A DNA stretch of 64,000 bases from Ramazzottius varieornatus (taxonomy: Eukaryota > Animalia > Tardigrada), in contig BDGG01000003.1 in the NCBI GenBank assembly GCA_001949185.1, positions 4,461,092 to 4,525,091 of the forward strand, written 5' to 3'. Position numbers and translations under genes: made by a program. Positions 1 through 47,827 of the stretch are shown here, one piece after another; the first letter of the stretch is position 1; each line of letters starts with the position of its first letter. The notes beneath the pieces are model-generated. The model saw nothing but the letters and a program-made list of their open reading frames with translations, was not told the origin of the DNA and ran no database searches.

Positions 1-367
1 TGTCATTATTATCATCTCACAACGACCTCGGTAACTAATGTCATGTCATTTTATGTCATGTCTTGTAGTGTGGTGGCGTAACTGGCGTTTCCAACTTTCC
101 GCCATTTACTGGATAACAACAGTGGTCCTGAAGGTGAAAATTACGAACGACGACATAGCAGTATTCCATAGAGTATAATTGGATCAAAAATACAGTCACT
201 CGAGAGAAACCGTATGTCGTCACAGTAATTTTCGATAGTTACATATGGTCACGTATTTGATTCAATGAAACGCTGACAAGAGAATCGTAGGCGAACGACC
301 AGGAAGAGCTACCCAACGCATTCAGCACGTCGAATCAGAAAAGCGACAAAAAATATCGGGAGCATCC

Positions 368-3300
368 TCAGTGAAAGCTGTCATTGCGGGAGAGCCAGAA
401 AGCCGAAGTAGCAGATGTTTCTTGGCTTTCTTCCTAAAAAAAGAAAAGGATCGAATGGCTGATGCGTACTCCAGCTCAGTAAATCTCACCTCGGCCTTCA
501 TGGCTGCCTCAATTCGATATTTTTGGATGAAACCCAGCTGGTTCTTGAAAATGTCCGAGATGCGGACTCTTGTGGGCAGGGAGGACGAATGGAGTTCGAA
601 CGCGGTCCTCACCGTCTCTCCCAGAACGTAGAAACGCGGAACTTTCGATACGTTCACCAAACCTCCAGTCACACTGCCAATATGTAGTCCCGCCTGCCAT
701 CTCACTTTCTTCTCCTCCAAGAAGTCGGGCAAAATGTTCTGATAGCCTTCCATGAAACTTAGAGCAAAGTCTGCTGCGTCCTCCCCATTGGTCGCACTGC
801 TGGAGGAACCGCCTGCAGAAAGACCCGCCACGTATATGCTAGCATGGCCAGCGGAATCCGCTTTAGAAATATTGTATTTTGTTAAGAGTCCGTCGTGGTC
901 TGAAAGCCACAGAGACATTCTGCAAATTGAGAGCACCATGTGGGACGTCGGCAAAAGACTTGAACAGGATCATTTTCCCAAGTGGTGCACGTCAACCGTG
1001 CATGCGGCTGACGGAAAGCGTGCGCCGCTACAGAAAACGAAGCTAGCATAATCGTTTTCGCAAAGTGGCGCACGGCTCCGGTCAGTAACAGTGTAAACTT
1101 GCGCTACTTGGAAAAAACGATCCTGGTCAACTCAGTTGCTCGCGTCCCATTTGTAAGTTAAAGCCAGGTTACACGTACAACTTTGGAATTTCTCCAGAAA
1201 GACGAAGGCTTCTGTAACCCCCAGCTGAGTAATCGTGCACGACAGTTCGGTCGAAGTCAGAACGCAGACGGCGACAGACTCGAACGTCGAAGGATGAGAA
1301 CCAGCATGGGCCACAACCGCGGGCACTTGAGCTGTCCTGAGGTCCTCCAGCTTTCTCATTGCTGTCTCAAGTTCCGTCTGCTTCTCAGTCAGCTGATTTT
1401 CGAGATAACTATTATGGTTTTCCATTGACTGCAGCATGTTGTCCATCAGAGCCTTTCTTTTCGGGAAGATTCCATTCGAGACTTTTTTAACGGCCATGAT
1501 CGTAAGCCGTTCTGATGAGTCTTCGGCCCACATTGACCGGATCAATGCGAAAATATTCGGCCATTCATGGAGAACATTCTGTGAGATTTTGGGTCGTATC
1601 TTCTTGTACTTGACAGCGGTCAATATGCTCAAAGCACTGTTGTGCGAATCCACCAGGTCCTCGTAAGGACTGCAGTTGGTAAATATCTCGTACAAGATCA
1701 GTCCCAAGCTGTAAATGTCTGCCCGCATGTCGGCTGATTGAACAATGTACAGCCCGGCTGCATCCCGTCTTAGCAGTTCCGGAGCAACGTAAAGCAGGCG
1801 GCTGTGATACGTCTCGATCTTTCCCTCGTTGGGCGCTTCATCCTGCGAAGTTTTCGCAGCTGTATAGAAGTACTCGAAGGCGATGAAAACGCATCTCTGT
1901 GCCACCGTCAGTGCGTGCTGCTCCCAGTCGCCAATCACGCCGTTCCACTGGTGGTCTACGAAACATGAGTGGGTAGACAGTTGACCGTGAGTGATGCCCT
2001 GCTTGTGGAGAAAGGCTAGTCCTTCGATTAGGTCACGGCTTAGAGAGAACGTTACAACTTCCGGGTAGGCATCTCTGTTTAGCAGGAAGTCCTGCAAGAA
2101 GAATACATAGCCCTTGTATCCTTATTGGTGGTTGTTCGCATGAGGAGAAAAAAAGTTACAACACACAAAAAACCAGGTAAACAAATTGTTTTTCCAAGCG
2201 GCGCACGCTTTCAGCTAGTGACACCGAACATGTGCATCACTCGAGATAATAATCAAGGCAGCTGAAAGAGATTGTTTTCCAAGTGGCGCGCATTTTTATG
2301 TCAATAACACAACGAACGTGTGCCCCTTGGGAAAGGAAGCCGATCTTGCCGAGCTTGTTTGCCGAGACCTTATTTATGCATCATGTTAAAGAGACCTTTA
2401 GGCATCCTTTCGAAGGGCACGATGAAATGAGCATCCATCTACCATTCGCCCGGAGGCATACTCCGAAAAACGACGTGATGTTTGCATGGGCGAAATTCCG
2501 TATGCGAATCATAGCTTTCCGTGTCGCCCACCTAAACGTCTCCGGATCGTTTAGTGGCTGGAGAAGTGGTTGTGCCAACCGGTACTGGTCATCGTGCAGC
2601 CGGACAACCTGGTGCTCCGTCCCGAAATGCTTCGTAAATAAAATGCTACCTATTGTAACGGTGGTCATGAAGGACCCTTTCGATTTAACCGAGAGCTGGC
2701 TGTGACTGGCTGGCACGTATTCGTCGAGGACTATAATGTATGTCGCTTTCAACACATCCTGATAGCGCAGGTAGAAATGGTACAGAAAGAAGGCTCCGAC
2801 GCTGGAACCGAGTGTACCCAGCAAGGCTAGGCAGACTGCGACTGGGACTTGCCACTGATCGTAGTCTCCGTTGAGGGTCTTCGTCTCAATTTCGACCAGG
2901 CGAGCTACCAATTGTGTCCCGCAGACCAGCTTGTCAAAAATGGTTTCTCTGGTGGTCTTTGCAGCTTCGAGACTCACAGGTACTCTCACGGAGTCGCGTA
3001 TGATACTTCTGGCGACTGGCTCTTCGAGGACAAACCGAAAGTACCGGTGCAGTTCCATAAGGATCGTGCAGTTTTTCAGGGGGTTCTTTTTTATCACCAA
3101 GTAGGTGAAGGCCGAGATGGGATACGTATTCGTCGAACTCTGCGCTGAGCCGGAAGTATCCCCGGCTGGCAGACTGTCGGCAGTGTTCGTGGTTTCGTCT
3201 GTGTCGGTCGCAGGTGATGTCCACTCGCCATTTTCGTTCTGAATGCTGGCCTCGGATAGAACCTGGAAGCAAACTTGTCTGAGGACCACCATGTGATCAG

Positions 3301-4435
3301 CGGCTGAGGACCACGTGACATGGAATGTCGCCAAAGCCAAGTCGTCTCCAAGAGACGCAACTTTTCTTTGTTATTAGCCAAGAGCTTGCGCCACTTGACA
3401 GAGCAATTTTGTCGAGTTCGACTGTTTTTCTAAGTGGCGCACGTTTCTGGTTTTACTGGCCAATAGTGAGCGCCACTTGGGGGAAACCATTCTGGTGAAA
3501 TCATTTGCCGGCGTCTCGCATACTGCAAGACGGAATCCAGTATAAATCACGACTTACGCTGTCGCGAGCATCCGAAGAACCCAGGTATCCAACGGAATAC
3601 GGCATGTTCAGCACAATCCCCGACGCGCCGCGACTACGCTTTCCGCAAAGAACTGTCATTGATTTATTCCATCTGATGGGTTCCATCGCATCATTACACC
3701 CTGTCAAAATCCTTACAAGCTTCATCCATCAGGAGATTAGGGTCGGCAGTAATCGTTACTCACCTTGAGAGAAGGTATTCACTTCCTGATTCCACTGGGG
3801 GTTGAAAGCAGCCAGGGATTTTGTGAATATGTGGGTGGTGCCCGAGTTGTCGGTTCGTACAACAACAATTATGGAATGGTTGGCGCTCCTTAAGAACCCA
3901 TTCATTTGGACCAGGATGGGATCATTCCACAGACGGATGGTTCCGTTGAAAATTCCCACCAGCGCCTCTTGGGTAAGTTTGAGGCACTTCTCGGAAGAGT
4001 TCGTCAGGTCGTCTGGTAAATTATACACCACAGAAACCGACCTAAAAGAAACAATAACTCTTCGGATTTGGGCGTATTTTTGAGAAAAGAAAATTTTGCC
4101 TGGGTCGGATCTTACCCGATCATTACGGGAAAGTACTGGAGGTCGTCATCGGTACCATCCGAGGAAGGTTCAACGTCCGAACCCGCGAAATCCAGTACAT
4201 CATTCCTCAACATTCGAATCCCTGTTCCACTGCCGACGCCACGGTAAAGAACGCTGACATCCGCGTAGCGCATCCGCATGGCTTGATATGCCGGCTGCAA
4301 AGCTTTATAGACGTCAAGCGGAATAGTGGCCCCACCTCCCACGATGGTCACTTTGGGTCTTCCGGCGCCACCGCAAAGCTCAACGTTCAGCCAAATGGCC
4401 AGAATTGGCAGGAGTAAGTAGTAACGACACACCAT
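368..4435 (-). CDS. Receptor guanylyl-cyclase-like protein with extracellular PstS-type phosphate-binding domain; pseudo-cyclase
   Basis: Phase-consistent GT-AG exons 4435-4116, 4041-3764, 3700-3558, 3262-2396, 2091-1179, 899-490, 433-368. Signal peptide MVCRYYLLLPILAIWL. PstS motifs GGGATIP, YRGVGSGTG, DFAGSD, VVRTDNSGTT, SVGY, YPISAFTY. TM VPVAVCLALLGTLGSSVGAFFLY. Kinase-homology domain (HANITSFFG, HGQLSTHSCFVD, LLYVAPELL, ADIYSLG). Coiled coil MDNMLQSMENHNSYLE. Cyclase-like GLHIGSVTGG...PRFYVLGETV...AFWL. Confidence 0.88.
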
Positions 4436-5534
4436 CTTCGTGTCCAAATATCTACCAGCGTTAACGATACATAAAACTTGAAAGAACTTGGAGATGGCTC
4501 TATGAAGAAGACAAGCATTCGAACTTCCTCATGATATTCTACCACAAGCGGGGCGTTCGACCCGGGTGCCTTACTGTTACACAACCTCAAGGACAAAACG
4601 AAAGATTTACACCGATGGTGGTACGCAGATATCGATGTGGTACCTGCGGTCAAAATCAATCGCGAAAGGATCAAGAGCAAAAATCTGACATGACCAATGT
4701 GGTGTACCGTTGCTGGATCGCGGAAGATCATCTGCTGACTCTGCTAATCGTAATCGTGTTCGAGTACCTCCGCGTGCGACAAAGGCGAAGATTGAAATTA
4801 TCGAAATAGCACAAGGCGTACGTGTTATTCCGCAGTCGTTAGGGTCACATCGTATCGAGCGAGTACGTGTCATGCCCTTGACAGCTTACATGAACTAATT
4901 TCTAGTTCGTACTGCGTTCAAAACCTTTCATCGTCGCGTTTTTTTACCGGAAGGCATCAGAAATTCTCCGCTGTTCCTGACGGGGTGCGCGTCAGTACTT
5001 CGAGCTGCGGTTCAGCACACTGCTTGGAGCCATTAGAGCGTGCTTTCCAACGGAAGCCATCAGAAAATTAGCATGTTACAGATGTGGTCCTGCCTGAACG
5101 CACCTGAGTTCCATATTTCATAACCCATAAAAACAAACAAACTCGGCCGGATTCTCTTTCCAAGTAGCGCACGTCCTCAGCCAAAAACACCGGAAAGGTA
5201 TGCCACTTCGGAAAACAATCAACTCGACAGGATCGTTTTTTCCAAGTGGCGCCCGGCTCTAGCCAACGACATTGGAGGCGCGCGCCACTTGGAAAAACAA
5301 TCTTACCGAATTTGTTCGCCGAGCTTCCACTGGTGCGGAAAAGTGTAAACTCGCACGTATAATATCCACGGGCGTGAAACACTAAAACCTGTGGCCGACT
5401 TTTGATATTTAATACTTGAAGAAAAGCATAATAACAACAGAAACGTTCCATCGTATTCTTCGTGCACATCAGAATACATGACTTGATGCCGGCTATCGGA
5501 TGTGCCATGAAAGATATTCTGCGTAATTCAAATC

Positions 5535-7793
5535 TCATCTATAGAGGCTACTCTTGTCGGACGTTGGAGAACTTCCACCCGTCGACTGGTACGATCCCAA
5601 GTTGCCAGTGACTCCTTCCAGTTGGCTGGCTATGGAAGCACTCAGGCTGGAGCCACTTAGCGCCTCACTACCGTTTCCGTTTCCGTTAAATCCGCTTCTT
5701 CCATAAGAACTCAAAGGACCATAAGCATTCCCACTGTACGACGAGGAACCTGAGCCTCCATTATTCGAGCCGGACTCGTAGGCAGCGGGCTGACTTCCTG
5801 CCCCGTACGAACCACTTCCTCCCCCATAGGAATTACCCGACTGTGGCGCGGATTTGTAGGAAGCAGTGATGGATGACTGGTAGGGACTCTCTGCGTAACT
5901 GTTGACGTTGTGGCTGTAACTCGAGCTGTAACCGTTGCCACCACCACCGTATGAAGAGCCAGAGTTGTAGGGGCCGGCACCGTACTTGCCAGCAGAGTTA
6001 TAATTGCCGCCGTAACTGCTACCACCGCCACCATAGCCGCCTCCACCGCCTCCTCCATACTTGCTTCCACCTCCACCACCATAGCCACCACCGCCACCGC
6101 CGTAACCTCCACCGCCAGAACCACCGTAGCTACTACCTCCATAGCTGGGTTTCTTATAGGGACCGTACATGCTACCGCCACCTCCATAACTGGGTTGATA
6201 TCCACCGCCACCACCTGAAATCACAGTGCATAACTCAACTTAAGATAATCCAAAGTAGGCACAATGGATGCTTCGAAAATTACTGTGGTTGCGTACCGTA
6301 GCCGCCGCCGCCACCACCTCCGTAGGACCCGCCACCTGAGCCATAACCACCTCCTCCATAGCCGCCACCGCTTGACCCTCCGTAGCTACTATCTCCGTAG
6401 CCTCCTCCTCCATAACTACTACCGCCACCTCCGTAGCTGTCGTAGACCGGAACTGGTATAGGGATGGGAGGACCCATGATAGGAATTGGTGGACCGGGAA
6501 CCGGTATCGGAATTGGAATAGGCGGAGGCACTAAGATATAAATTCCGGTTTACTAAACCTTGCCGCTCAAATCGCTATGTTTGAATCAGTTTTGGATAAA
6601 CAATAGCCATGAGATCATATCAAAGTCAATATTTGGACGATGTTACTGCAAGAAACAGTTCAACGTATTCAATTTTTGTGGCTCATTTGGACCTACGAGC
6701 CCTTTTTTAAGTTTGAGAGACCGGCAAACGAGACGTTCCAGAATGTTATCCCAAGTCGCGCACCACTCAAGTTTGGCGCAATGATGACATGCGTCACTTC
6801 GGAAGACAATCTTGTGCATTTCGCTTCCCTTTAACCATCAAAATTCATAATCATCAGCAACAAAAAAAATTAACAAACTTGAGTCGACTTACTGTATCCA
6901 TAATTTCCACCACCTCCATAACTTCCTCCTCCACCGCCGTATCCTCCTCCACCGTATCCACCCCCTCCAGAACCGTAGCCACCACCACCTCCACCATAGC
7001 TACTTCCGCCTCCATACCCGTTCTGCCCATAACCACCTTGCATTCCATAACCACTTCCTCCATATCCCCCTGAACTACCATAGCCTCCCATTCCGTAGCC
7101 TTGCATCCCGTAGCCACCACCACCACCAGCACTGTACCCGCCACCTCCTCCATATCCACCTCCTCCATACCCGCCACCTCCGTAACCTCCCATCATTCCG
7201 TATCCCCCTCCTCCATAGCCACCACCTGCACCATATCCGCCACCGCCTCCGTAGCCTCCATAACCACCTCCTCCAGTTCCATAACTGTTACTAGTTACTG
7301 CATACCCTGCAATAGGAGTTCCCTGGATCACAGTACTGCCAGGAGGCACCGACGGCAGTCCTCCGCCTCCATAGATTGGCGTACCCTGGATAACTGTACT
7401 TCCCGCAGGGACCGATGTCAAACCTCCCGCGGCACCCGTGTAGAAACTGGTTGTGACTGGAGTTCCCTGGATGACGGTACTTCCGGCTGGCACCGATGTC
7501 AACTGGCGACCATCTAGCGTCCCGCCGGCGGTCACGGTAATACTGAGAGGGACACTGTTGCCAGCTCGCGCGGTGAGCGGCGAACTGGATGATCCGGACG
7601 AGGAGAACCTCGAAGAAATCTCCCGCCGCCTGGGTTGATCGGCGATGGTCGGAGAAAACTCCCGCTTACTGTTCACAGTGTTTGAAGCACTAGCTACAGG
7701 TGAGCTAGAGTCCGCCGCATCTTGAGCAAAAGTCAGTCCACACAGACACGATAAAAATAAAAAGGAATAAAATCCCTTCTTGAAACGCTTCAT
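5535..7793 (-). CDS. Secreted Gly/Tyr/Ser-rich low-complexity structural protein (cuticle/eggshell-like)
   Basis: Exons 7793-6893, 6530-6297, 6214-5535 join in phase. Hydrophobic N-terminus, three LxSVPxGSTVIQGTP repeats, long GGGGY tracts, a Pro/Ile-rich exon (PPIPIPIPVPGPP). Confidence 0.85.
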
Positions 7794-10355: not shown

Positions 10356-11248
10356 TTAGACAACCACGTTCATGCTGGCACCTGATCCGTTGCGGTAGCT
10401 CTTGACGGCCATCAAGCTCCAAATCTGCAAAAAAACTCACTGAAGATCGAACATTTTTTTTCAGAAGACGCGGTGAATTCGAATCTGGAGGAAAAACTTA
10501 CGTTGACCAGAATCAGGATGGCAAAGATGATGATGTCGGCAAGGTACGCACGAACAATCTCCGCAGGGATCTACAAGGGAAGAATTATGTCTAGCCGTAA
10601 CTCAACGATATCGTAGCTGACTCTATGAACAAGGAAGTACGAACAATACAAGCGAAGCTTCGATTAAACTTACTCCATCGTAGTACATGGCATAGTCAAT
10701 GATGCGCCAGATGACAGCAGCGATCTGCACGACGACGTAGACGAGGAAGATCATGAACCAGGCGCTGATGAGGGATCCGCTGTTCTGTTAAAGAATTGCA
10801 TCGAGTTAATCAGTTGACTTGTACTTGATTTGAACGTCGGCAAATGAACTGAACATGGGTCATCGCAAGTGGCGCACGTTTTCTTTGTTATTGGCCATGA
10901 ATGTGCGCCACTTGAAACAACGATCGTGGTCATGTCATTTGCCAATATCCCCTTCTTACTCTATTCAGGCCCATGAAGAGGAAGATGGCGGCTATGATCA
11001 GAGAAACTCCAAAGATGACTGCCACGATGCGGCTCCAGGCCATGTACTGAGGAGCGTAGGTCCATCCCCAGATGTTGAATCCCAACAGCAGGATACCCAA
11101 GATCTGCAGCAAGAAACGAAAAGTGGATTTTTCATTCAAGCGATATTACTTAAAAGAAATCGTCAAAGAAAAGGGATGAACTTACGAATGTGTACACAGA
11201 TACCAAGTAGCTGCCGGTCTTCAAGGAGCAAGGTCCACAGGTTCTCAT
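10356..11248 (-). CDS. Small four-transmembrane protein (LAPTM/Mtp-like tetraspan family)
   Basis: Five phase-0 exons: MRTCGPCSLKTGSYLVSVYTF / ILGILLLGFNIWG...LFMGLNR / NSGSLISAWFMIFLVY...YYDG / IPAEIVRAYLADIIIFAILILVN / IWSLMAVKSYRNGSGASMNVVV*. N-terminal CxxCxLKTG and four hydrophobic helices. Confidence 0.8.
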
Positions 11249-13028: not shown

Positions 13029-15693
13029 ATGCCCATGTTTCCGGACCATTCCCCGCACCATTCACCGAGTAGATCGGGTCCCCGGACACCGAAGATGCCT
13101 ACGCGCCAAAGCCGGACTGGAGTACCGGAAAATAAAAACCTGAGATTAGTCAAGCGGGTTCAGAGAAAGTTGTCTGTCGCTTGCTTACCCGATCCGCGAA
13201 CCGACATCGTCAAGAAGGAACAACAGCGGCGCGTCACGGTTCTTGGAGCAGGTAAGGCCTTCTATATCAGATCATTAACCAGGTTCCTCACCGAAAACTT
13301 CCGTCTTTCACGGGGCGCCTGTAAGGACATGCAGAAAATAAACCGGATTTTGGGACGTCGGCAAACGGCTCGAATATCATCTCTTTCCCAAGTGGCGCAC
13401 ACATTCAGCCAACAACAATGAAGACATGCGTTACTTGAGATCCAATGGTGTTCAGCGCCTTTGTCGGCGTCGCATCTATTAAATTCTTAATTTTATTATT
13501 CCAAGCATTCTATTTTGATATATTAAGGAAAAAATTGGTTTCGAAAATGAATTTCGATGGAAAAATTGTACGTGGCTTTCGGCGTGAATACACAAATTGC
13601 CTTGGCTGGAAGACGAATGGCCTTGTCACTTGTCCATTACTACGCCCATCAACATTCCATCAGCTGATCAAGTCGAAGGTTCCTCGAGAGGGATCGCGTG
13701 GGAAATGTTCAAGGAAAAGCCGTGCTAATTTAATTATTGTCCGACATACCGTGGCGGCGTCCGGGAAGGAACTTCGATACCCAAAATCAATCCCTACGGC
13801 TGCCGCGAGTGTGTCATATCGTAATGTGGATAAATTGTCAAATCGTCTGCGTTGACCAAGCATGCAGCCGCCGCCGGATAAGGCGCGCTCAACGGGGAAC
13901 CTTCAACTTGGGCCTGTCTGGAAGACCTTGTTATTGCGGTCAACTGTGATTAATGGTCCTGTCTGATGAGGTCTGCAAAATGGAAAGCACACGCCTCTGT
14001 TTTTCTTGTTTCAGCAAACACCGGGAAGAGCGCCATCATCACACAGTTCCTTTATGAAAGGTAATCGCGCCAGTCACTCGAACTCCATACTGCTGTGTTT
14101 TTGTGGTACAGTGAAAAAACTGCTCACATCCAGCCAAACGAAAAACCCAATCAGAAAGTTTACCCTAGAAAAAAAATTTTCTATTGTGGAATTAACAAAC
14201 TGAGTTCGACGGAAACAAACGAACTGAACCAGAGCGTCATCACAAGTGGCGCACGCGTCCGATGTTACAGGCTAAGAGTCTGCGCCACTTGAGAAAAAGA
14301 TTTGTCTCAAATCATTTGCCAGCGTTTCAAGTATGGCACAGAATCAAACTCAAAACGAAACGGTGTTTGATTTTTGTTCAGGTATCCGTACAGATACAAG
14401 AAGACCGTGGATGAGCTCCATAGAGCAGAATACCTCATCCAGAATCAAGGTCTCGTTCTGGAGATCCTCGACACTTCCGGATATTTCGAGTTTCCGGCGA
14501 TGCGCGAGTTAGCCATCCGGAAGAGTGATGCCTTTATCCTCGTCTTCAGCGTCGACAATGAAGCTTCTTTAGAAGAAATGAAGGGTATCCGAGAAGAAAT
14601 CCTCCAGATCAAGCGAGGTCCCGATCCTGGTCCAGATGAGGAAGAACCTAGGCCAAAAATACCAACGGTCGTGGTCGCGAACAAGGCGGACATTCCAGTC
14701 GAAGATTGGGCTGTCAGCCGCGAATACGTCGAACTTCTGGTAAAGCTTTTATATTTTATAGACCTTGTGTCTTTATATGTTTTGATTTTTTATCTAAATC
14801 TATTTGTCGAGTAACGGAGTGGTATTTTAGAATTTTAAAACAATTCACAAAAGTGGCGCACGATCTCAGCCAGTAAAAATTAAAACGTACGCCGCTTGCG
14901 ATGAAGACCTGGGTGAAGTCATTTTCCGACCACCAGAGTGGTTTGATAATAGGTGAGTTTTATTTCTGGGTTGGACGAGGTTAGGCATGAGCTTCCTTTA
15001 AGAACGAAAAAGTTATTAGCTTGTGAAAGATCTTAAAAAGCCCTCCTTTAGCCGCCTTTGCAGACAGATTCAATAACGATTCTTGCGGCTGACCCCTTTT
15101 AGTGAACCTCCTTTGCGACGTTAACACGATTCTCGCGTGATTTCCAATGAGAAATTTCCACAATATCGACAGATGCTGGATTTATCCATTATATTCGATC
15201 TTTTGACATCTACTTGCATCGTACTTGCACTGTACTTGCAGTCGAGTGGTAGCACCTCACAACCCTTTCATGTTCTTCACAGGTGAAGTGCGACTGGGGT
15301 TCCTGCGGCTACATTGAGGCCTCTGCAAAGACCAATTACAACATTGTAGAAATCTTCAAAGGCAAGTTTAGAGTTACTCATTGGCCTCGTTTACCGGAAT
15401 CATTAAAATTTTCCACCTCACTTTCAGAACTCTTGGTTCAAGCCAACATCCAATACGCACTGAGCCCTGCAATCAAGCGTCGTCGTGAGTCCATGCCCAA
15501 CGTCTTCCCACCTATCCCCCGGAATAGCCTGACTTCGGAGCAACGAGCTACTGACCTAGACGAATCCCTCATGGAGCACCTTCAACTTCCCTCTGGAGCT
15601 AACTCGCGCCAAGGTAGCATCAGCGGAGCCAGTTCGCGACGAGGCAGCACCCTCACTGCGCCCACGAAACGCGATTCCTGCAACATCTCGTGA
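13029..15693 (+). CDS. Ras-family small GTPase, RasD (Dexras/Rhes)/Ras-dva-like
   Basis: Exons 13029-13251, 14015-14060, 14382-14739, 15283-15361, 15428-15693. P-loop GAANTGKS, LDTSGYFEFPAMRELAI, NKAD, EASAK, C-terminal CAAX CNIS. Confidence 0.9.
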
Positions 15694-28812: not shown

Positions 28813-31800
28813 ATGGATAGTAATCCTGCCGCTTCGTTGGACGGGCTGGACTCCGTCCTCAATAGCTTGTACAGCCCTGGACTGAACCGTTACATGATGT
28901 GAGTGATATTAACTCTCACTTCCGGTAAGCGCTCAACGTTTAGTATTACGCAGCTACTATCAACGGCTTGTTGGTTACAGGGAGAGTTACGGTCTGAGCA
29001 ACGAAGAGATCGACGCTCAATTTGCTAATCTCCTAGCACAAGCTGACAGCGCTCCTTATAAGTCAACGCGTTCCAGAGCGCCCACTGCACCCTTTTCCCC
29101 ACTTCGTGTCCCTGAATCGCGCTTCGGACAACAGTACTACGTTTCAGCACCGAACGATCCTTCCGGTCAGCAACACTACCAACAGCCATTGACGTCTTCC
29201 CAACACATCGACAATGTCCCCATCCTACATATCCCCGAACAGAACGACGAAGCACAGTCTGGGAATCGGAGCGAGGATGAAGAGTACAATAACTTTCTAC
29301 GGAGTATCATCAACCCTTCGGACGTGACCGTGGTCGAGAAAGAAAAGACGAAGAAGGTCGATCCTCCGTACTACTACCCTAAGAAGAAAACTCCAACGGA
29401 TGACGTGGAGTACGACCGACCTGTCACCAGTACGTATAGACAGAGTAGCGCACTGGAAATGAGTTGACTTTTCGTTCGGTCAATGTCGCTCTACCGTTCT
29501 ATTGTCCCTAGAAAACGAACATCAGGAACTGCTCAACGATCTAAAGAAAAATCCTGTACCCGGAGTGCCAACAGACACTGATTTACTGTTGCTCGAACCT
29601 CCAATGACTACCAGGTACAGATCGTTTTTCACGTGGCGCACGTTTCCCGTCAATAACACCGGCACTGTGCGCCACTTGTAAAACGCAATATTGTCGAGTT
29701 TGTCCGCCCAGCTGCCGACTTCACGTTTCGTTATTTTTGAGGTCTGCCGCGAGGAGGTCTTCCGACATTATTTCGCCCACGCCTTCCTTGTCTCCCGCAA
29801 AGACCAACGATGTCCACCACACGCACCAGCAGCAGTGTTGCGCTAATAGTGCATCTTACCCTTCTGGCTCCGTTACCTTCCATAACGCTTACTCCACGTA
29901 CCCTAGCACCAGTCACCCCTCTCAGCCATCAGTGCACAGTTTCCTTAATGCATCTCAAGCTCACTCACGTCCCAGCAGAACGCACCAGCGGAGTTCCCAG
30001 GAGTCTTCTAAAGGAAACAACGAGATCGGAGAGTCGTTCAAAAAGCCACTTCCGGTCATGAAGCCTCGAGGAAGGGCAGGAAAGGCTTCGTTGACAAGGC
30101 AAGTTTCTTACTGGTTTAGAGTTTGGATCACTGCTAAAGTATATACACTGCTTAGTTCCAGGAAAGATGAGCACCAGCATTCTTCTAGCCAGAATAAGCA
30201 TTGTGCACACGGCGGTGTGAATTCGATTAATTCAGCCTCTCACACGGCTCAAGAAGCTTCTCTGACCAGAGAAATCAAGAGGCGTTTCGATTCTGTGGCC
30301 ACGAAGTTCAAACAGTTCTGCGAGGTATGCCCTCATTTTATTTGCCGTTTATTTTCTAAAAACAGCGTTTGGGTTTCTACGAACAGGGTTCAGAATTCCC
30401 GGACGACCAAAAAGAGTTCCTCGTTCAAATGATGAACAAGGCGATCAACAGACCCGACGATAGAGAAGCAGTCATCCTCACGGAATTCATCACGCGCGTT
30501 GTATCGTTGGTGACTGGGCAAATGGACGCTTTGAAGGTATACAAGACCCATTTTAGCATTCCTGAAATCGAATTTTGGTACATGAAGTTCTTTTTATTGA
30601 AATGTTGGTCATTCGGGAATTTTTCCTAGGTTGAGCCTTTTATAAGGGAAGCGCGGAAGGTTGACCTTCCATTCACTTCGGTGGTCTTCGGTGTCCTCGT
30701 ACACGATGACAGTCCGCTGATACTCACTCTGATGCCACATCTTTTCGGAAAGACGAAGCTCATAAAGGCCATGCAGAAAGAGTCGCTTGCGACTGCCGCA
30801 GGAAAGCAAAGGGAGGAACTGGCGGAAGCTTTCCAGGCAGCGATGCGTTTCAACGACCATCCTTACCGGTTCCCAAAGCCGAACTACGGCTCTCGAGCTG
30901 CCAGAAAGCTTGGTCTTACCGGAAAAGAAGGCCTCTTGAACCCACAGTAAGTCCGAAAGAAGCAAGGCCTTTGGGAGCTTGACAAACAAACTCCACAAGA
31001 CTGTTTCTTTTTCAAGGGGCGCACGTTCTCAGTGTGTTTGACTGGAAGTGTGCGCCACGTTGGAACACCGATCTTGTCGAGTTGTTCAGTTCGCTTAGGT
31101 TTCGTTTTCGGAATGCATAAGCAAATATTTTATCTGTTAGTTTTTTTAGAATATTTGAGTTTATGGCGGAAGAAGTCATCACGAACCCGGAGAAGATCAT
31201 CGCTGAGACGCGATCTAGCACGACGCCTCGGTCGAGTCTGGGAACAGATACCGAAGTGAAGCCTGCAGTCGCTTCGAATACTCACAAAGCAGTACCAGAT
31301 AGACTTTTAGATGCATCCCCGGCTATGAACGATAACAGCTCAAACGACTCATTGAACAGCACACATCACATTCTGAACACCGGTCACATTGCCGGAGAAG
31401 GCCCTAACACTCCGGGAAGTGTCTTGGATTTCAACTCCATCTTCGCAGGTACTCTTGAACCTTCCTCTGTATGGAATGTCGGAAAATGACTTGAACAAAA
31501 CCGCTTTCCCAAGTGGCGTACACTTCCAGCTAATACCAATGAAGACGTGCGCCACTAAGTCGTAAGATAACGATTGGGTTCAAATTATTTGCCGACGTTC
31601 CATAACTGTTTTTTGTGGGTCTTCAACTGGTAGATTTCAAGTGAATGTGCTTGCAGGTGTTCCGACGCCTCCTTCGGCATTCATGAACGAGTTTTCTCCG
31701 GCTGGTATGGCACAATTTCCTGGAGACGCGGTGCACACGCAGAACTTCGTTCGACCGCCACCGATATCCATTTCGAGACCTTCGCGACGTGTGCCGCTGC

Positions 31801-38429: not shown

Positions 38430-41400
38430 TTAAACTTCTGCACACCGGGAATTTGAATTAGAATTTCCGCTTCCACTTTCGCTGGGCGGATGTACAACAA
38501 GCCTCGGTGTCGAAGTCCGACCTTTGCTCAAGAAATCGCTAACTTGCTCAGGGTCAATCTCTCGTTCCTGCAAGCTGCTTCCGCTAATACTGGAGGTCTC
38601 GTCTTGTTCGTTGTGAGGTTTGGCCCTTACTCGACTCTTTATCTTGCCTTTCTTATCTTTCTTCTTTTGCTTCGGACAGTATATTACAAGGGCATCTCGA
38701 ACTCCATTCACATTGGAGACGGGAACCAGGAACTTCTTGGACTTGCCCCATACGAGGTTGAGCGGCATGGCTGGCAGAGAATGGCCGCTGTTGATGGGAT
38801 GCTTGAGCGACAAACGCTCGTGGCAATTTAGGTTATTCTGAGCAAGGAGGCTATTTTGCCGAGTACTCAGAAAGGCCAACTCATCCACGGAGGAGGAAGG
38901 ACGGTACCGCAGGCTGCTGCCGAGAGCTTGGGAGTTGATTGAATGGATAGAGTACTGCTCATGATGTATTTCCGCTCGAGGGTACAAGCAGTAACACAAG
39001 GTCGAACGGTACGCTTTACGAAATCTTGCGGACAGAATGGAGTACAGGAATGGATTTACCTGCGAAGAACAGCGTTATTGCCTAAAGTTGCTCGCCGAAA
39101 GTTCGTCCACTACGAAAGGGCGGCAGACGAAACGTGCCAGAGGTGTTATCGGAAGTGGCGCACTTTCTCATTGTTTTCGGCTGGAAGCTTGAGCGATTTG
39201 AAACAACGATCTTGTGCGCTTCGTTTGCTGCGACCTCTTAAATGGTAAGATCCGGAACTTACCGTGGACGCACCGTAGTAGAAAACGCCTGCAAGAAAAA
39301 AATTAACCTTTGTTTCGTTACAAGGAAGTACGGGTTGGAAGATTGAGTTTCGCCGTACCGGAAATGTACGTGAGGACTCGGTGGATAAACATGTTGTTAT
39401 GGTCCCAGTGTTTCTCGTACACGGCATGCATTCTCTGTAAAAACGAAGGACATGCCACACCCGGACAGATAATCCGCGTCAGGAAAAACGAGGAGGTCTT
39501 GCCGGTCCTTACTTGAGCGTGATGTGGAGCATAGCAGACGAAAAAGGCTAAGGCCACCGCCACTGCAAAAAAATAGAAATTATTCCTGAACGAATAGAAC
39601 ATACATAAACCGGAAGCTCCGGGGCGGTTGGACAGTAAGTCAAAGTGAAATATCATTCAGATATCTTTAACAATCGAGTGGCGAATTTAGACTGCCAAAA
39701 TTCGGAAGTTAATCGATAAAAGTCGACTTCCTGCCTTACGGCACTCAGATGACGTGACTAACTTCGTTCCGCTAGGTCCTTCACCCATCATTTAAATTTC
39801 AGATTTTCTAATCCTCGACCATAAAGCAACTAATGAGACTACTACACTATATAGTCCAGCAAACGCTCTCATGCCACGCCCAACGTATAAGCTAACCTCG
39901 AGCTCGTTGTTCTTTCTTTTGGGGACTTGGGATACGAGGAACTTAGAGTAGTGCTCCAGCTCAAGGGTTGCCGCGTATGTGGGACGCATCCAAGTTCAAG
40001 ATGACTTTGGACTCTCGGACAATACCGTCGTCTCGTTGAACAGACACATTGCACTCCACACATACTCAACATGCAGCTGGAAGAGCCTCGTTTCCGGCAA
40101 AGACCAATCACACTTTTGTTGCCACATATGATCATAGGAAGCGAAGTCAGAACGTTGTCGGAACACAGATACCTATGCACTTATATACCTTCCAGGACTC
40201 AACTTGTAATAGCTGGCGAATGAAAAGTAGAAAATCGTTACCTCAAGTGACGCGCCTTTCCATTGTTACTGGTGAGAAGGGTGCGCCACTCAAGATAACG
40301 ACCTTCTACGTTTTGTTTTCCCAGCTCTCATTCACTACCTGTAGAACGACGTTCAAATTTAGGAGACCTCGGAGACCTTTTCAAGTTCCGGCGACGTGAA
40401 TCTCATTTTGCTCTTTTGAGACACTGGAATGACAAGAGGTGATTGGGCCGCGCCTTCGTCCTGTGTTACTTCCGGATCCCAGCTTATGCTGCTTCTAATC
40501 TAGAAAATCCCTATTCAACCAGTGTTCAGTCTTTCACCCCAACTTGCAGCTTCGCTAAGAAAAGGCTGGATGATCCACGATGGCACGAGATGCTTGTCAG
40601 CAATACAGATGGTAACATACATCATCGTTCTTCCTAGTGGATTGCAGTTGGCATTGGCTAGGAACTTGTGACGAAGGACAAGCCTCTTGATTGATCGTCA
40701 AGGCAATTAAATTAGAAAGTGGAACACAATCCCTGCTACTGGAAAAAGAAGACTGTGGAAGCCCAGCCGGAAACTTCAGGGCAACAATATTGCCTCTGGT
40801 CTAAGTATACTGACGTGCATTGCGTGATGCAGTACAATTTTAGCCAGCAACGTGACCGTATGACTGTAATATCTCACGGTCCGTATGCGTATGCCGAGTG
40901 CAATGTCAAGAGGAACCCTACTGTTCCACACATCCCACTTTCATCCCACTGATTGACATCCGACAATGGAAAAGCCATCCAGAATCAAAACAGTGTTCGG
41001 TTTGGAGCCTCAGTCAGTCTGAGTTGAATATCGCTCTTCAGCCGACGGTGTCTACAACGAACCTTTGCGTCTTGTTCCGGTGCTCTCAAGAAAACTATTC
41101 CAGAATCGCACTGGATGTCTCATTTCACGCAGTAACTCCCTTCATGCTACTCGGTATTGTCGGTGTTCCAGTTTCGTTTAGCAATGGGACTAGGCAAACG
41201 AAATCGGTTAAATGAATTTGTAAGCGGTGCACGGTTCCAACCAACAACACTGATGACGTGCGCCGTTCGGAATGGCAAACTCGACAAGATAGTTTTTCCA
41301 AGTGGCACATGCATCAGGCAAACATCACAGACTACATGCGCCACTTGGCAAAAAAACCTTGTCGAGATTGCTTGCCCAGTTCCATTTACTGCCGTTATTC

Positions 41401-45670: not shown

Positions 45671-47827
45671 TACTCCTTTCGAATAAGAACGAAACTTCGC
45701 GGAATTTCCTATACAACCACGAAGCGTTAAATGACTGTTTTGGTTAAGGAACCAGGACTCTAATTGCGCCATCGCTCGTAAATCGGTAGCTCGGTAAACA
45801 CTCGGCGATATCGTTTTCCCCAGTGGCGCACGCAGACAACCACAACTACCGAAAACGTGCGTCACTTGGGAAAACTTGGCGGAATCGTTATTCCAAGTGG
45901 CGCACGGTTTCAGCCAGGAACATCGAAGACGTGCACCACTTGGTGAAACAATCTTGCCAAGTCTTCTTGCCAAGCTCCCATGTTTGATGATAAAGTGTTC
46001 CGATACTTCACCGGAAAACCTGGTTCGTGGAGTCGGTCCATTTCAAGAAGAAGTCCCTCATTAGGCTGATTGTGCTGATTTTCCAGCGAACGTTATCTAA
46101 CCCGCAACAAGCAAGCCATGATTAATGATGTGCGGTAGTTTGAAATAGCAATCACGCTAAATTTCTGCGTTCGTGTGCATGGCATGCACGCCACGACCTG
46201 TGAGAAATCTGGTGTAGCTCCGCGGACACCAGATTAACCACGCTAACGAAGCAGGCCATCTCTCCCATGATTCAACCCCTAAAGTTAGTCGGGAGCGCGC
46301 GCGTAGGTTTATCAAAGGATCGTGGCTAAAGCACCATTCTGGTTCACCGACTTCTTCGTTCCCCTGGTGGAAATTTCCAGCTCAGTCCACAAAATTAACA
46401 GTCAGTTTAGTCACATGCGGAGAAGTACGACAAAGTATAGTTTTTCTGGAATTAATAAAGCGGTCCACGCCTTCGCGAAATTCGATCAAGACCCTGCCGA
46501 TAGTCGCTATTGCATGTAAATCGGCCTAGACAGCGCTCCACAAAAGATGCGGTGATAACTGGCATCAAAAGCGCACGTAATTAGGGCCATGCCAAGCTTC
46601 TCCAGACAAAGGAACACTCCCTAGGAAACCGCTGCTTTCTAAAGCGTTATTCAGTTAATGACAACCTGATGAATAACGCCCAAGAAAAGACTCCGTGTCG
46701 TTCCCCTCACGAACCTAACCGACTCGTGTTAAAAACTCCCTCCCTACGACTGCGACGGCCTAAATTAGCGTCTTTATTCTTGGGAAAGACTGATGAAATT
46801 GGACGGGGAAGAAATGCGCCGCATGTACTTCAACGGTATCTTCCGATACTTGAGCCTGTTCAAGACAATGTAACCTGGAACTCGTTGGCGCATGCGCCGA
46901 CTTCAAGACGTAGTCTTTTTCGAGAGATTACGAACTCCAGGCACGATCATTAGGAAATCAGATGCAATTCCCATGAGGGTATTTTGAGTGCTCTGTGGAA
47001 TATTTACAAAGACCATCCCGGCTTCAGAGTACAATAAAGCAAGACCTGGAACGTGACGAGAAGCCATTATAAAACATTGAACACCTCGAATAATCGTGTG
47101 CATGAAGGTCGTGCGGTGTAATGCTCGATGTAAACCGGAAAGAAAGAGAGGGGTATAACAGAGCGCCCGTTCGTCAAAACCTCCAGAAAAGCAAGCATGC
47201 TGTTGAGCGCCGAGTAGGATCATTTTGGAGACGGAAAGGTCCCACGGGACCTTCAAGACTTTGACTACTTCTATTACGTAAGTGATGCTATCCCCTTAAG
47301 ATGACGGGTTTTCCACCCGTATCAACGAACTGGAGATACAGTACATTACAATGCGACATGACTGACGCGCGAGGACGGGTTTTCGATCCACACCGACCGA
47401 CGAGTCGATAACACCGTAAAATTCCCATTGTACGATGAGAAAGAAACCCTACCGTTGGGACCGTGCCGGGTTCCTTGTTGCACCGGACGTAAAACATTGG
47501 AGCGCGGCAAACTAAACTCAGTCAGATCGTCTTCCAAGCGGCGCACGGTTCTGATGTTCCTAAGCGAGAGCGTGCGCCACTTGAGGAAATGATCTGGTCG
47601 AGTGTTTTCGCCGCGCTACCTGAACAGTTATTATTATGGTCTATTTCAATTTTCTCTTCGAGAACTCTAGCTTTCGCCCCCAGATATTACGGTTTTTGAT
47701 GAGCCGTTAATTTGGCTTTGAAGTAGCACTGCAAGCCCAGCAGTTCAAAACTCGAATATGTATATAAAATTCTGTATGAAAATTTGTTGCACGTACCAGA
47801 AATGTCCGAAAGAGAGAATTCTACCGT

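Follow-up and report, generated by a model that had tools for sequence, protein, structure and literature searches.

A PstS-type ectodomain on a receptor guanylyl cyclase chassis in a tardigrade: a candidate phosphate-binding receptor with a predicted inactive cyclase domain

Introduction

What is a phosphate-binding domain of the bacterial PstS type doing on the outside of an animal receptor, and what could such a receptor report to the cell? The question is raised by a gene at 368–4435, on the minus strand, in a stretch of 64,000 nucleotides of the genome of the tardigrade Ramazzottius varieornatus (contig BDGG01000003.1, positions 4,461,092 to 4,525,091). This whole stretch is called the window below, and positions are given in its coordinates. 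A first, sequence-only reading had described the gene as a cell-surface receptor in which a PstS domain, acquired by domain capture, was joined to the transmembrane (TM), kinase-homology and cyclase domains of a receptor guanylyl cyclase, and had proposed it as an extracellular phosphate sensor. Detection of extracellular phosphate by animal cells is an unsettled matter, and the vertebrate candidates, the PiT transporters, CaSR and FGFR1, are indirect.

We followed up this reading with profile, structure and homology searches, read contigs and a phylogenetic tree. The gene probably encodes an intact, transcribed type I receptor of the receptor-guanylyl-cyclase lineage, in which a PstS flytrap with a complete pocket is coupled to a non-catalytic output, and which belongs to an old family with a wide range among protostomes. 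We refer to proteins that combine PBP_like_2, kinase-homology and cyclase domains by the provisional name PstS-RGC.

Results

Gene structure and transcription

The receptor gene consists of seven exons, and the span 368–4435, which the sequence-only reading had already marked out, is exactly that of its coding sequence. The summed exons amount to 2997 nt, or 998 codons, with a sole, terminal stop (370–368), and GT..AG borders were read from the sequence at six of six introns. The encoded protein has, in order, a signal peptide, the PstS-type ectodomain, one TM helix, a kinase-homology domain, a coiled coil and a cyclase-homology domain; profile matches, hydropathy and alignment all bear out this order, as it had been drawn from the sequence. 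Hydropathy gave only two hydrophobic segments, a signal-like one at residues 6–25 and the TM helix at about residues 386–408 (exon 4), the pattern of a single-pass type I protein with a signal peptide. The three introns placed inside the PstS part likewise held up, with canonical splice sites and gap-free homology across each junction.

Contigs from public R. varieornatus runs were aligned to window positions 300–4500. In run X2, one contig joins 1179 to 899 and 490 to 433, and another joins 2396 to 2091; the 56-nt intron 6 is spliced in run X1 too. Spliced contigs thus bridge exons 4–5, 5–6 and 6–7, and the joined transcript that had been assumed is supported by RNA data at the junctions of introns 4, 5 and 6, and not at those of introns 1–3. 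Contigs from run X1 fall on exons 1, 2, 4, 5, 6 and 7, and the intronic ones only on copies of a short repeat (see below). RNA-type contigs cover 4168–4452 at exon 1, 3801–3983 and 3839–4042 at exon 2, and 2712–3092 at exon 4, while contigs over 300–432 extend the 3′ untranslated region to at least position 300. Runs X10 and X11 yielded unspliced, DNA-like pieces. Two other gene models were rejected: alternative splicing of exons 5 and 6 (donor 1174, acceptor 920), because the contig joins 1179 to 899, and read-through to a stop at 322–324, because the intron at 434–489 is present in two runs.

The fusion itself can be read from exon 4, which encodes the C-lobe of PstS, a Thr/Ser/Asp-rich insert, a juxtamembrane Cys pair, the TM helix (about 2780–2848) and the N-lobe of the kinase-homology domain. 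Since all of this lies in a single frame, the joining of PstS to the receptor is independent of any splice, and the parts belong to one gene. The six spliceosomal introns, the spliced RNA-type contigs and the location about 4.46 Mb into contig C3 also sustain the earlier conclusion that the gene is not bacterial contamination.

The strain of run X2 differs from the window at 14 coding positions, seven synonymous and seven non-synonymous, none of which affects a pocket residue. This count, from a small sample, is compatible with moderate purifying selection.

The ectodomain and its phosphate pocket

Homology searches were run exon by exon and not on the joined protein. The Pfam family PBP_like_2 (PF12849; cut-off 27 bits) matched exon 1 with 29.6 bits and exon 2 with 44.3 bits. 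The NCBIfam PstS profile TIGR00975 matched exon 1 at profile positions 2–61 (31.5 bits), exon 2 at 80–161 (67.8 bits) and exon 4 at 205–300 (15.9 bits), a collinear series as expected for one intron-cut PstS domain; the 205-bit cut-off of this equivalog, which applies to a whole protein, was not reached exon-wise. Exon 3 had no Pfam match of its own, and in the alignment it matches the corresponding segment in all animal family members. No exon matched ANF_receptor (PF01094) in the Pfam scan. Solved structures matching exons 1 and 2 were phosphate-binding proteins only, the best for exon 2 being PstS of Yersinia and Escherichia coli (E 1e-11 to 7e-9), and a feature look-up in the Protein Atlas returned bacterial PstS clusters only. 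Together with the matches to the kinase and Guanylate_cyc families described below, these results show that each domain family named in the sequence-only reading is recognized by profiles. They support a PstS-type ectodomain, predicted to have the type II periplasmic-binding fold and not that of ANF_receptor. As it runs on in frame into the TM helix and the kinase homology, it is a PstS homologue and not a subunit of a PstCAB ATP-binding cassette (ABC) importer.

Exon 1 aligns with residues 3–74 of E. coli PstS. In MAFFT and structure-chain alignments, T37 (4325–4327), S69 and D87, all encoded by exon 1, are equivalent to Thr10, Ser38 and Asp56 of E. coli PstS, and R169, D171, S173, G174 and T175 are equivalent to Arg135, Asp137, Ser139, Gly140 and Thr141, so that each of the ligand motifs picked out by eye was found at its expected place. 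All nine positions of the E. coli pocket align and eight of the nine residues are kept; the ninth, Phe11, which contacts phosphate through its backbone, is Ile in the window protein. Asp56 and Asp137 are the residues by which E. coli PstS prefers protonated phosphate to sulfate.

The family member P0071, whose ectodomain is complete, was modelled with AlphaFold2 from an alignment of 43 animal, fungal and prokaryotic rows. The mean predicted local distance difference test (pLDDT) score was 87.7, with values mostly of 92–98 in the ectodomain. Foldseek placed E. coli PstS first (E 5e-30; TM-score 0.85–0.88, normalised by target; root-mean-square deviation 2.6–3.1 Å), followed by other PstS proteins, with DING proteins at TM-scores of 0.62–0.64. 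The expected superposition on PstS was therefore obtained for this family member, and the fold of the window protein rests on its homology. By sequence, too, the ectodomain appears to be of the E. coli PstS type and not of the DING type.

The intracellular part

Exon 5 matched the Pfam kinase families Pkinase (50.5 bits) and PK_Tyr_Ser-Thr, and exon 6 matched Guanylate_cyc (PF00211) with 40.8 bits (cut-off 21.9), compared to 198–222 bits in intact family members. The best solved match of both exons was the ANP receptor 1 (GC-A). For exon 5, the best match covers residues 654–834 of that receptor, and an alignment over 603–834 takes in the H-G-x-L motif and the linker helix; exon 6 matches residues 877–991 (E 2e-7). 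The window protein thus has the kinase-homology domain and coiled-coil linker of receptor guanylyl cyclases, and both PF00211 and the match to ANP receptor 1 indicate the fold of a class III cyclase domain. The kinase-homology C-lobe in exon 5 is devoid of the catalytic-loop Asp, as in GC-A.

Family members and GC-A were aligned with the tail of exon 5 and with exon 6, each taken as a fragment by itself. In these alignments, the first metal-binding Asp, in the exon 5 tail, is replaced by Thr; in exon 6, the second metal-binding Asp is replaced by His, the base-specifying Glu by Asp, the transition-state Asn by Arg and the transition-state Arg by Glu. Of the catalytic site, the one residue kept is the Arg of the ‘PR(Y/F)’ motif, which contacts the triphosphate. 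Because the metal-binding and transition-state residues are lost, the cyclase-homology domain is predicted to be a pseudoenzyme that cannot itself make cyclic guanosine monophosphate (cGMP). Every active site of a class III cyclase takes its two Asp from one chain and its Asn and Arg from the other. A chain in which both sets are missing would therefore neither form a working site as a homodimer nor complete the site of a normal partner. A conversion of external phosphate into cGMP as the output of this gene itself is contradicted by the replacement of the Asp pair, the Asn, the Arg and the Glu.

A family of PstS receptors in protostomes

When exon 4 was searched against 1.84 billion representative proteins, 87 matches were found, many of them 800–1100 residues long and aligned over the whole exon. 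All ten of the matches that were scanned carry PBP_like_2, kinase homology and Guanylate_cyc. The co-occurrence of PF12849, PF07714 and PF00211 in predicted proteins extends over five animal phyla: Tardigrada (Paramacrobiotus metropolitanus), Priapulida (Priapulus caudatus), Mollusca (Mercenaria, Haliotis, Pecten, Argopecten, Saccostrea, Solemya, Sinanodonta, Patella, Liolophura, Gigantopelta and Bulinus), Annelida (Owenia and Paralvinella) and Nemertea (Tubulanus and Lineus). Automatic annotation has named such proteins ‘gcy-like’, ‘ANP receptor-like’ or ‘speract receptor’. The idea of an architecture peculiar to this animal is thereby refuted, the same design being found in another tardigrade and in Mollusca, Annelida, Nemertea and Priapulida.

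The positions of the phosphate pocket are kept in all full-length animal members and in a class-C G-protein-coupled receptor (GPCR) of the fungus Endogone, and the R-x-D-x-S-G-T/S loop is present in most proteins of the family. The animal members have, in addition, an insert of about ten residues after the anion loop and two conserved Cys residues before the TM helix, neither of which is found in bacterial PstS. The window protein shares the PstS-RGC architecture, the insert and the Cys pair with the mollusc, annelid and nemertean members.

The cyclase domain is less uniform. Canonical residues are found in Owenia (P0061) and Priapulus (P0020), which are thus candidates, from their sequences, for a direct phosphate-to-cGMP receptor; in Paramacrobiotus and in the majority of the mollusc and nemertean members, these residues are degenerate in different ways. 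Among the degenerate mollusc and nemertean cyclases, some keep the metal-binding Asp pair only and others the Asn only. If these proteins are obligate heterodimers, by analogy with soluble guanylyl cyclase, such partial degeneracy is the pattern that would be expected.

Word-limited homologue searches returned no named Ramazzottius or Hypsibius entry, which is no sign of absence. Full-text searching found no literature linking PstS or PBP_like_2 to animal guanylyl cyclases; the domain is mentioned in a listing of fungal GPCR domains (PMC3251606) and in the abbreviation list of a paper on amoebozoan GPCRs. The PstS-RGC is thus apparently a publicly predicted design that has not been described in the literature.

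Origin of the ectodomain

The 80 prokaryotic loci that matched exon 2 do so at 36–50% identity, with no lineage prominent and with the best bacterial identities at 38–50%. A tree was calculated from 34 prokaryotic rows (E. coli PstS and 33 fetched loci, from 22 phyla) and 14 eukaryotic domains; it is unrooted, the window exons were entered as separate rows, and the sampling of prokaryotes is biased towards the nearest. The prokaryotes all fall on one side, with an SH-like approximate likelihood ratio (SH-aLRT) of 99 in a quick tree and an ultrafast bootstrap (UFBoot) of 99 and SH-aLRT of 99 in a careful IQ-TREE analysis. In the latter, the Paramacrobiotus protein is joined by exons 2 and 4 of the window gene (93/97), within the animal group (93/99). 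The placement of exon 1 is unreliable, as this row is short and had no tardigrade partner in those columns. The eukaryotic side also holds the Endogone class-C GPCR and two domains of a protein from the ichthyosporean Chromosphaera.

The tree excludes a recent transfer from a sampled prokaryotic lineage. An old eukaryotic family fits it, and the route by which the domain first entered eukaryotes lies beyond the tree. The domain capture envisaged in the sequence-only reading, as horizontal transfer or as ancient retention, therefore survives in the form of an old eukaryotic retention or of one ancient capture, and not as a recent transfer.

One or several PstS-like domains were also seen in other eukaryotic proteins, namely P0053 of Chromosphaera perkinsii (2386 aa), P0122 (807 aa), P0124 (1360 aa) and P0125 of Palpitomonas bilix (1315 aa). 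Tandem PstS domains occur among them; a PARP domain (PF00644) is present in one protein and PF07699 in another.

Paralogues in R. varieornatus

An unexplained expansion of guanylate cyclases was described in the R. varieornatus genome (PMC5034306), and our profile scan gave at least 158 exon-level matches to the cyclase fold across the genome. A genome scan also revealed further PstS-like loci (Table 1), three of four of which have same-strand kinase-homology and weak cyclase exons downstream. The remaining one, paralogue C (C2, 3.45 Mb), has a PstS-like exon only, with no kinase or cyclase exon in the stretch examined around it. The pocket is altered in both paralogues in which it was readable, A and B, where the anion loop reads, for example, R-A-Q-G-S or R-S-D-R-F-T-T, and the cyclase motifs are degenerate in paralogues B and D. 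Among the paralogues examined, the window gene alone has a canonical pocket.

Table 1. Exons and introns of the receptor gene (window positions) and further PstS-like loci in the genome (contig positions).
Feature	Position	Strand	Description
Exon 1	4116..4435	minus	ATG at 4435; signal peptide and first part of PstS N-lobe
Intron 1	4042..4115	minus	74 nt, GT..AG; splits a Gly codon; homology gap-free across junction
Exon 2	3764..4041	minus	PstS core; anion-binding loop R169-x-D171-x-S173-G174-T175
Intron 2	3701..3763	minus	63 nt, GT..AG; Owenia homologue collinear on either side
Exon 3	3558..3700	minus	animal-type insert and hinge-proximal strand of PstS fold
Intron 3	3263..3557	minus	295 nt, GT..AG; bears copies of interspersed short repeat
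Exon 4	2396..3262	minus	one open frame; PstS C-lobe through kinase N-lobe
Intron 4	2092..2395	minus	304 nt, GT..AG; spliced contig in run X2
Exon 5	1179..2091	minus	kinase-homology C-lobe, coiled-coil ‘signalling helix’, start of cyclase-homology domain
Intron 5	900..1178	minus	279 nt, GT..AG; spliced contig in run X2; copies of interspersed repeat
Exon 6	490..899	minus	cyclase-homology domain, catalytic positions replaced
Intron 6	434..489	minus	56 nt, GT..AG; spliced contigs in runs X1 and X2
Exon 7	368..433	minus	short C-terminal tail; stop codon 370-368
PstS-like locus	C2:1751103-1754922	plus	genome scan
PstS-like locus	C1:4377917-4381835	plus	genome scan
PstS-like locus (paralogue C)	C2:3449862-3450167	minus	genome scan
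PstS-like locus	C11:1546275-1549709	plus	genome scan

Neighbourhood of the gene

A short interspersed repeat with the core TTCCAAGTGGCGCAC has 35 matches in the window at up to two mismatches, compared to 0.07 expected. Sites include 976–990, 2192–2291, 3428–3442, 5158–5294, 10863–10917, 29627–29681, 41296–41350 and 45817–45905. The copies often form inverted pairs about 40 bp apart, and are found in introns 3, 4 and 5 and upstream of the receptor gene; they are the cause of the repeat-type ‘joints’ in the read contigs. The repeat looks like a palindromic element or one resembling a miniature inverted-repeat transposable element (MITE).

Directly upstream of the receptor gene, at 5535–6531 on the minus strand, are long open frames rich in Gly, Ser and Tyr, with repeats of the GGYGGGG type. 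They have no Pfam match and may represent a gene for a glycine-rich structural or secreted protein. A eukaryotic neighbour gene is marked by an exon of the Ras small-GTPase family at 14374–14814 on the plus strand (53.4 bits). Besides this exon, the neighbouring open reading frames had no match to a Pfam family.

Discussion

A probable phosphate flytrap with a predicted silent output

The most probable reading of the locus is thus a PstS-RGC whose sensor is preserved and whose enzyme is not. In the mechanism that we envisage, orthophosphate or a very close oxyanion would bind between the lobes and close the flytrap, and the change would be relayed along the chain of juxtamembrane helix, TM helix, kinase-homology domain and coiled coil, in the manner of other receptor cyclases. 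The output of the window protein would be non-catalytic. Devoid of both sets of catalytic residues, it would block the activity of a catalytic paralogue with which it formed a heterodimer; its role might thus be that of a modulator or scaffold that depends on phosphate, or of a surface protein that binds it. A wider proposal, which we put forward only tentatively and consider rather doubtful as a whole, is that the PstS-RGCs are dedicated orthophosphate receptors of protostomes, in which intact members make cGMP and dead ones tune the response, built on a sensing module that arose anciently in the opisthokonts and is shared with class-C GPCRs of early fungi.

Several points weigh against the reading of the window gene as a working phosphate receptor. 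Among the listed run contigs, there is no junction contig for introns 1–3. The fold model is that of the family member P0071 and not that of the window protein, and phosphate binding by the window ectodomain is suggested by conserved residues only. E. coli PstS has an affinity for phosphate of about micromolar, and an affinity of the PstS type would be saturated in body fluid; to act as a sensor, the protein would have to face the external medium or bind phosphate less tightly. That it acts as a dominant negative in heterodimers is a conjecture. The word-limited homologue searches returned no deuterostome or cnidarian member, an absence that is not thereby established. The count of seven synonymous and seven non-synonymous differences is small and would also allow relaxed constraint, and the combination of a dead cyclase with degenerate paralogues may be a sign that function is being lost in the tardigrade branch of the family.

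This last point leads to the rival that the window gene is a paralogue in decay, which is still expressed but drifts within a large tardigrade cyclase family that evolves fast, and which itself no longer has a sensing role. The reported expansion of the family (PMC5034306), borne out by the at least 158 exon-level matches, would be the setting for such decay, as would the altered pockets of paralogues A and B and the degenerate cyclases of B and D; the equal numbers of non-synonymous and synonymous differences and the low-complexity insert in the C-lobe point the same way. The frame of 998 codons is nevertheless intact over seven exons and correctly spliced, and with about three non-synonymous sites for each synonymous one, a 7:7 count implies a ratio of non-synonymous to synonymous rates (dN/dS) of roughly 0.3. 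Moreover, the pocket residues are all kept here and are lost in sister paralogues, which argues for selection on the pocket. We therefore regard decay as unlikely. The same residues bear on the question of whether the flytrap has a different ligand (arsenate, a phosphorylated metabolite or a phospho-peptide, for example) or has become a module for dimerisation or structure only. It is common for receptors to turn an existing binding fold to a new ligand, and both the animal insert of about ten residues with the conserved Cys pair, absent from bacterial PstS, and the change of Phe11 to Ile would be in keeping with this. However, the retention across phyla of all side-chain ligands, including Asp56 and Asp137, would be difficult to account for if the ligand were not an anion with the geometry of phosphate, and a change of this kind seems improbable to us.

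Taken plainly, the sequence-only reading would make the window gene an active receptor by which external phosphate is converted into cGMP. In favour of this are the full architecture, which includes the coiled coil and a cyclase-fold domain scoring higher than Pfam requires, the kept Arg of the ‘PR(Y/F)’ motif, and the existence of members with all catalytic residues in Owenia (P0061) and Priapulus (P0020). Against this stand the substitutions in the window gene itself, of the metal Asp pair (to Thr and His), the Asn (to Arg), the Arg (to Glu) and the Glu (to Asp), and a domain score of 40.8 bits compared to 198–222 in intact members, which make catalysis by this gene very unlikely. Finally, among the named proteins in general libraries, those most like the ectodomain are bacterial PstS proteins, as they would be if a bacterial pstS had been transferred recently to tardigrades, or if contamination or misassembly had joined two genes. 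Given the three spliceosomal introns within the PstS part, the single frame of exon 4 from PstS C-lobe through TM helix to kinase N-lobe, the spliced transcripts, the orthologous architecture in five animal phyla, the separation of the prokaryotes, as a monophyletic group, from all eukaryotic rows (99/99) and the lack of any bacterial match above 50% identity, we attach practically no weight to such an origin.

The PstS-RGCs are a concrete, testable candidate family of sensors, in which the high-affinity phosphate-binding fold that is understood best in biology sits, with an intact pocket, on an animal signalling chassis in at least five protostome phyla, and in which active and inactive members can be compared. 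If the wider proposal is right, they would provide the first direct, genetically tractable phosphate sensor or chemoreceptor of animals. For tardigrades, the window gene offers an initial functional approach to part of the guanylyl cyclase expansion that was left unexplained.

Comparison with known systems

With bacterial PstS (E. coli; PDB 1IXH and 2ABH), the window protein shares the pocket positions 10, 38, 56, 135, 137, 139, 140 and 141 and, judging from the model of the family member (TM-score 0.85–0.88), the same two-lobed type II fold. Bacterial PstS is a free periplasmic protein that partners with the PstSCAB ABC system, whereas the window domain is the intron-cut ectodomain of a single-pass receptor, to which the animal-specific insert and the juxtamembrane Cys pair have been added. 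DING proteins, including HPBP, are phosphate binders of the PstS superfamily that were reported from eukaryotic samples. They are soluble, and we know of no intron-bearing eukaryotic gene that encodes them. Their matches are much weaker (sequence E 1e-3; TM-score 0.62–0.64 with the P0071 model), and the window gene is, in contrast, genomic, spliced and membrane-anchored.

On the receptor side, ANP receptor 1 (GC-A) has the same topology and the same inner order of TM helix, kinase-homology domain without the catalytic-loop Asp, coiled coil and class III fold. It differs in its ectodomain, which is ANF_receptor (type I) where the window gene has PBP_like_2/PstS (type II), and in its catalytic residues, which the window gene has lost. 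The salt chemoreceptors of the GCY group in Caenorhabditis elegans are receptor guanylyl cyclases as well. A closer parallel is provided by the NIT-domain guanylyl cyclases of placozoans and many bilaterians (PMC7400543; bioRxiv 10.1101/2023.08.02.551600), in which a bacterial-type sensor of small anions (nitrate/nitrite) replaces the ANF-receptor domain, and which are old in animals and absent from vertebrates. The NIT sensor is helical and lies between two TM helices, while the PstS flytrap precedes a single one, and the presumed ligands differ; receptor cyclases of the PstS type are unmentioned in those papers. The PstS-RGCs would thus be the second case of animal receptor cyclases with small-anion sensor domains otherwise known from bacteria.

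The replacement of an ANF-receptor flytrap by a PstS-like ectodomain is also found in class-C (7tm_3) GPCRs of early-diverging fungi and of aphelids, where the transducer is a seven-TM GPCR. Krishnan et al. (2012) listed SPPG_06488 of Spizellomyces, a class-C GPCR with a PBP_like_2 N-terminus, and gave no ligand or function (PMC3251606). The Endogone protein (P0100) is 36% identical to the ectodomain query from the nemertean Tubulanus and keeps all pocket residues, and further class-C GPCRs with PBP_like_2 were found in Amoeboaphelidium (P0136) and Cladochytrium (P0137). This link suggests an old, modular ‘phosphate flytrap’ of eukaryotes, mounted on a seven-TM receptor in those GPCRs and on a cyclase chassis in the animals.

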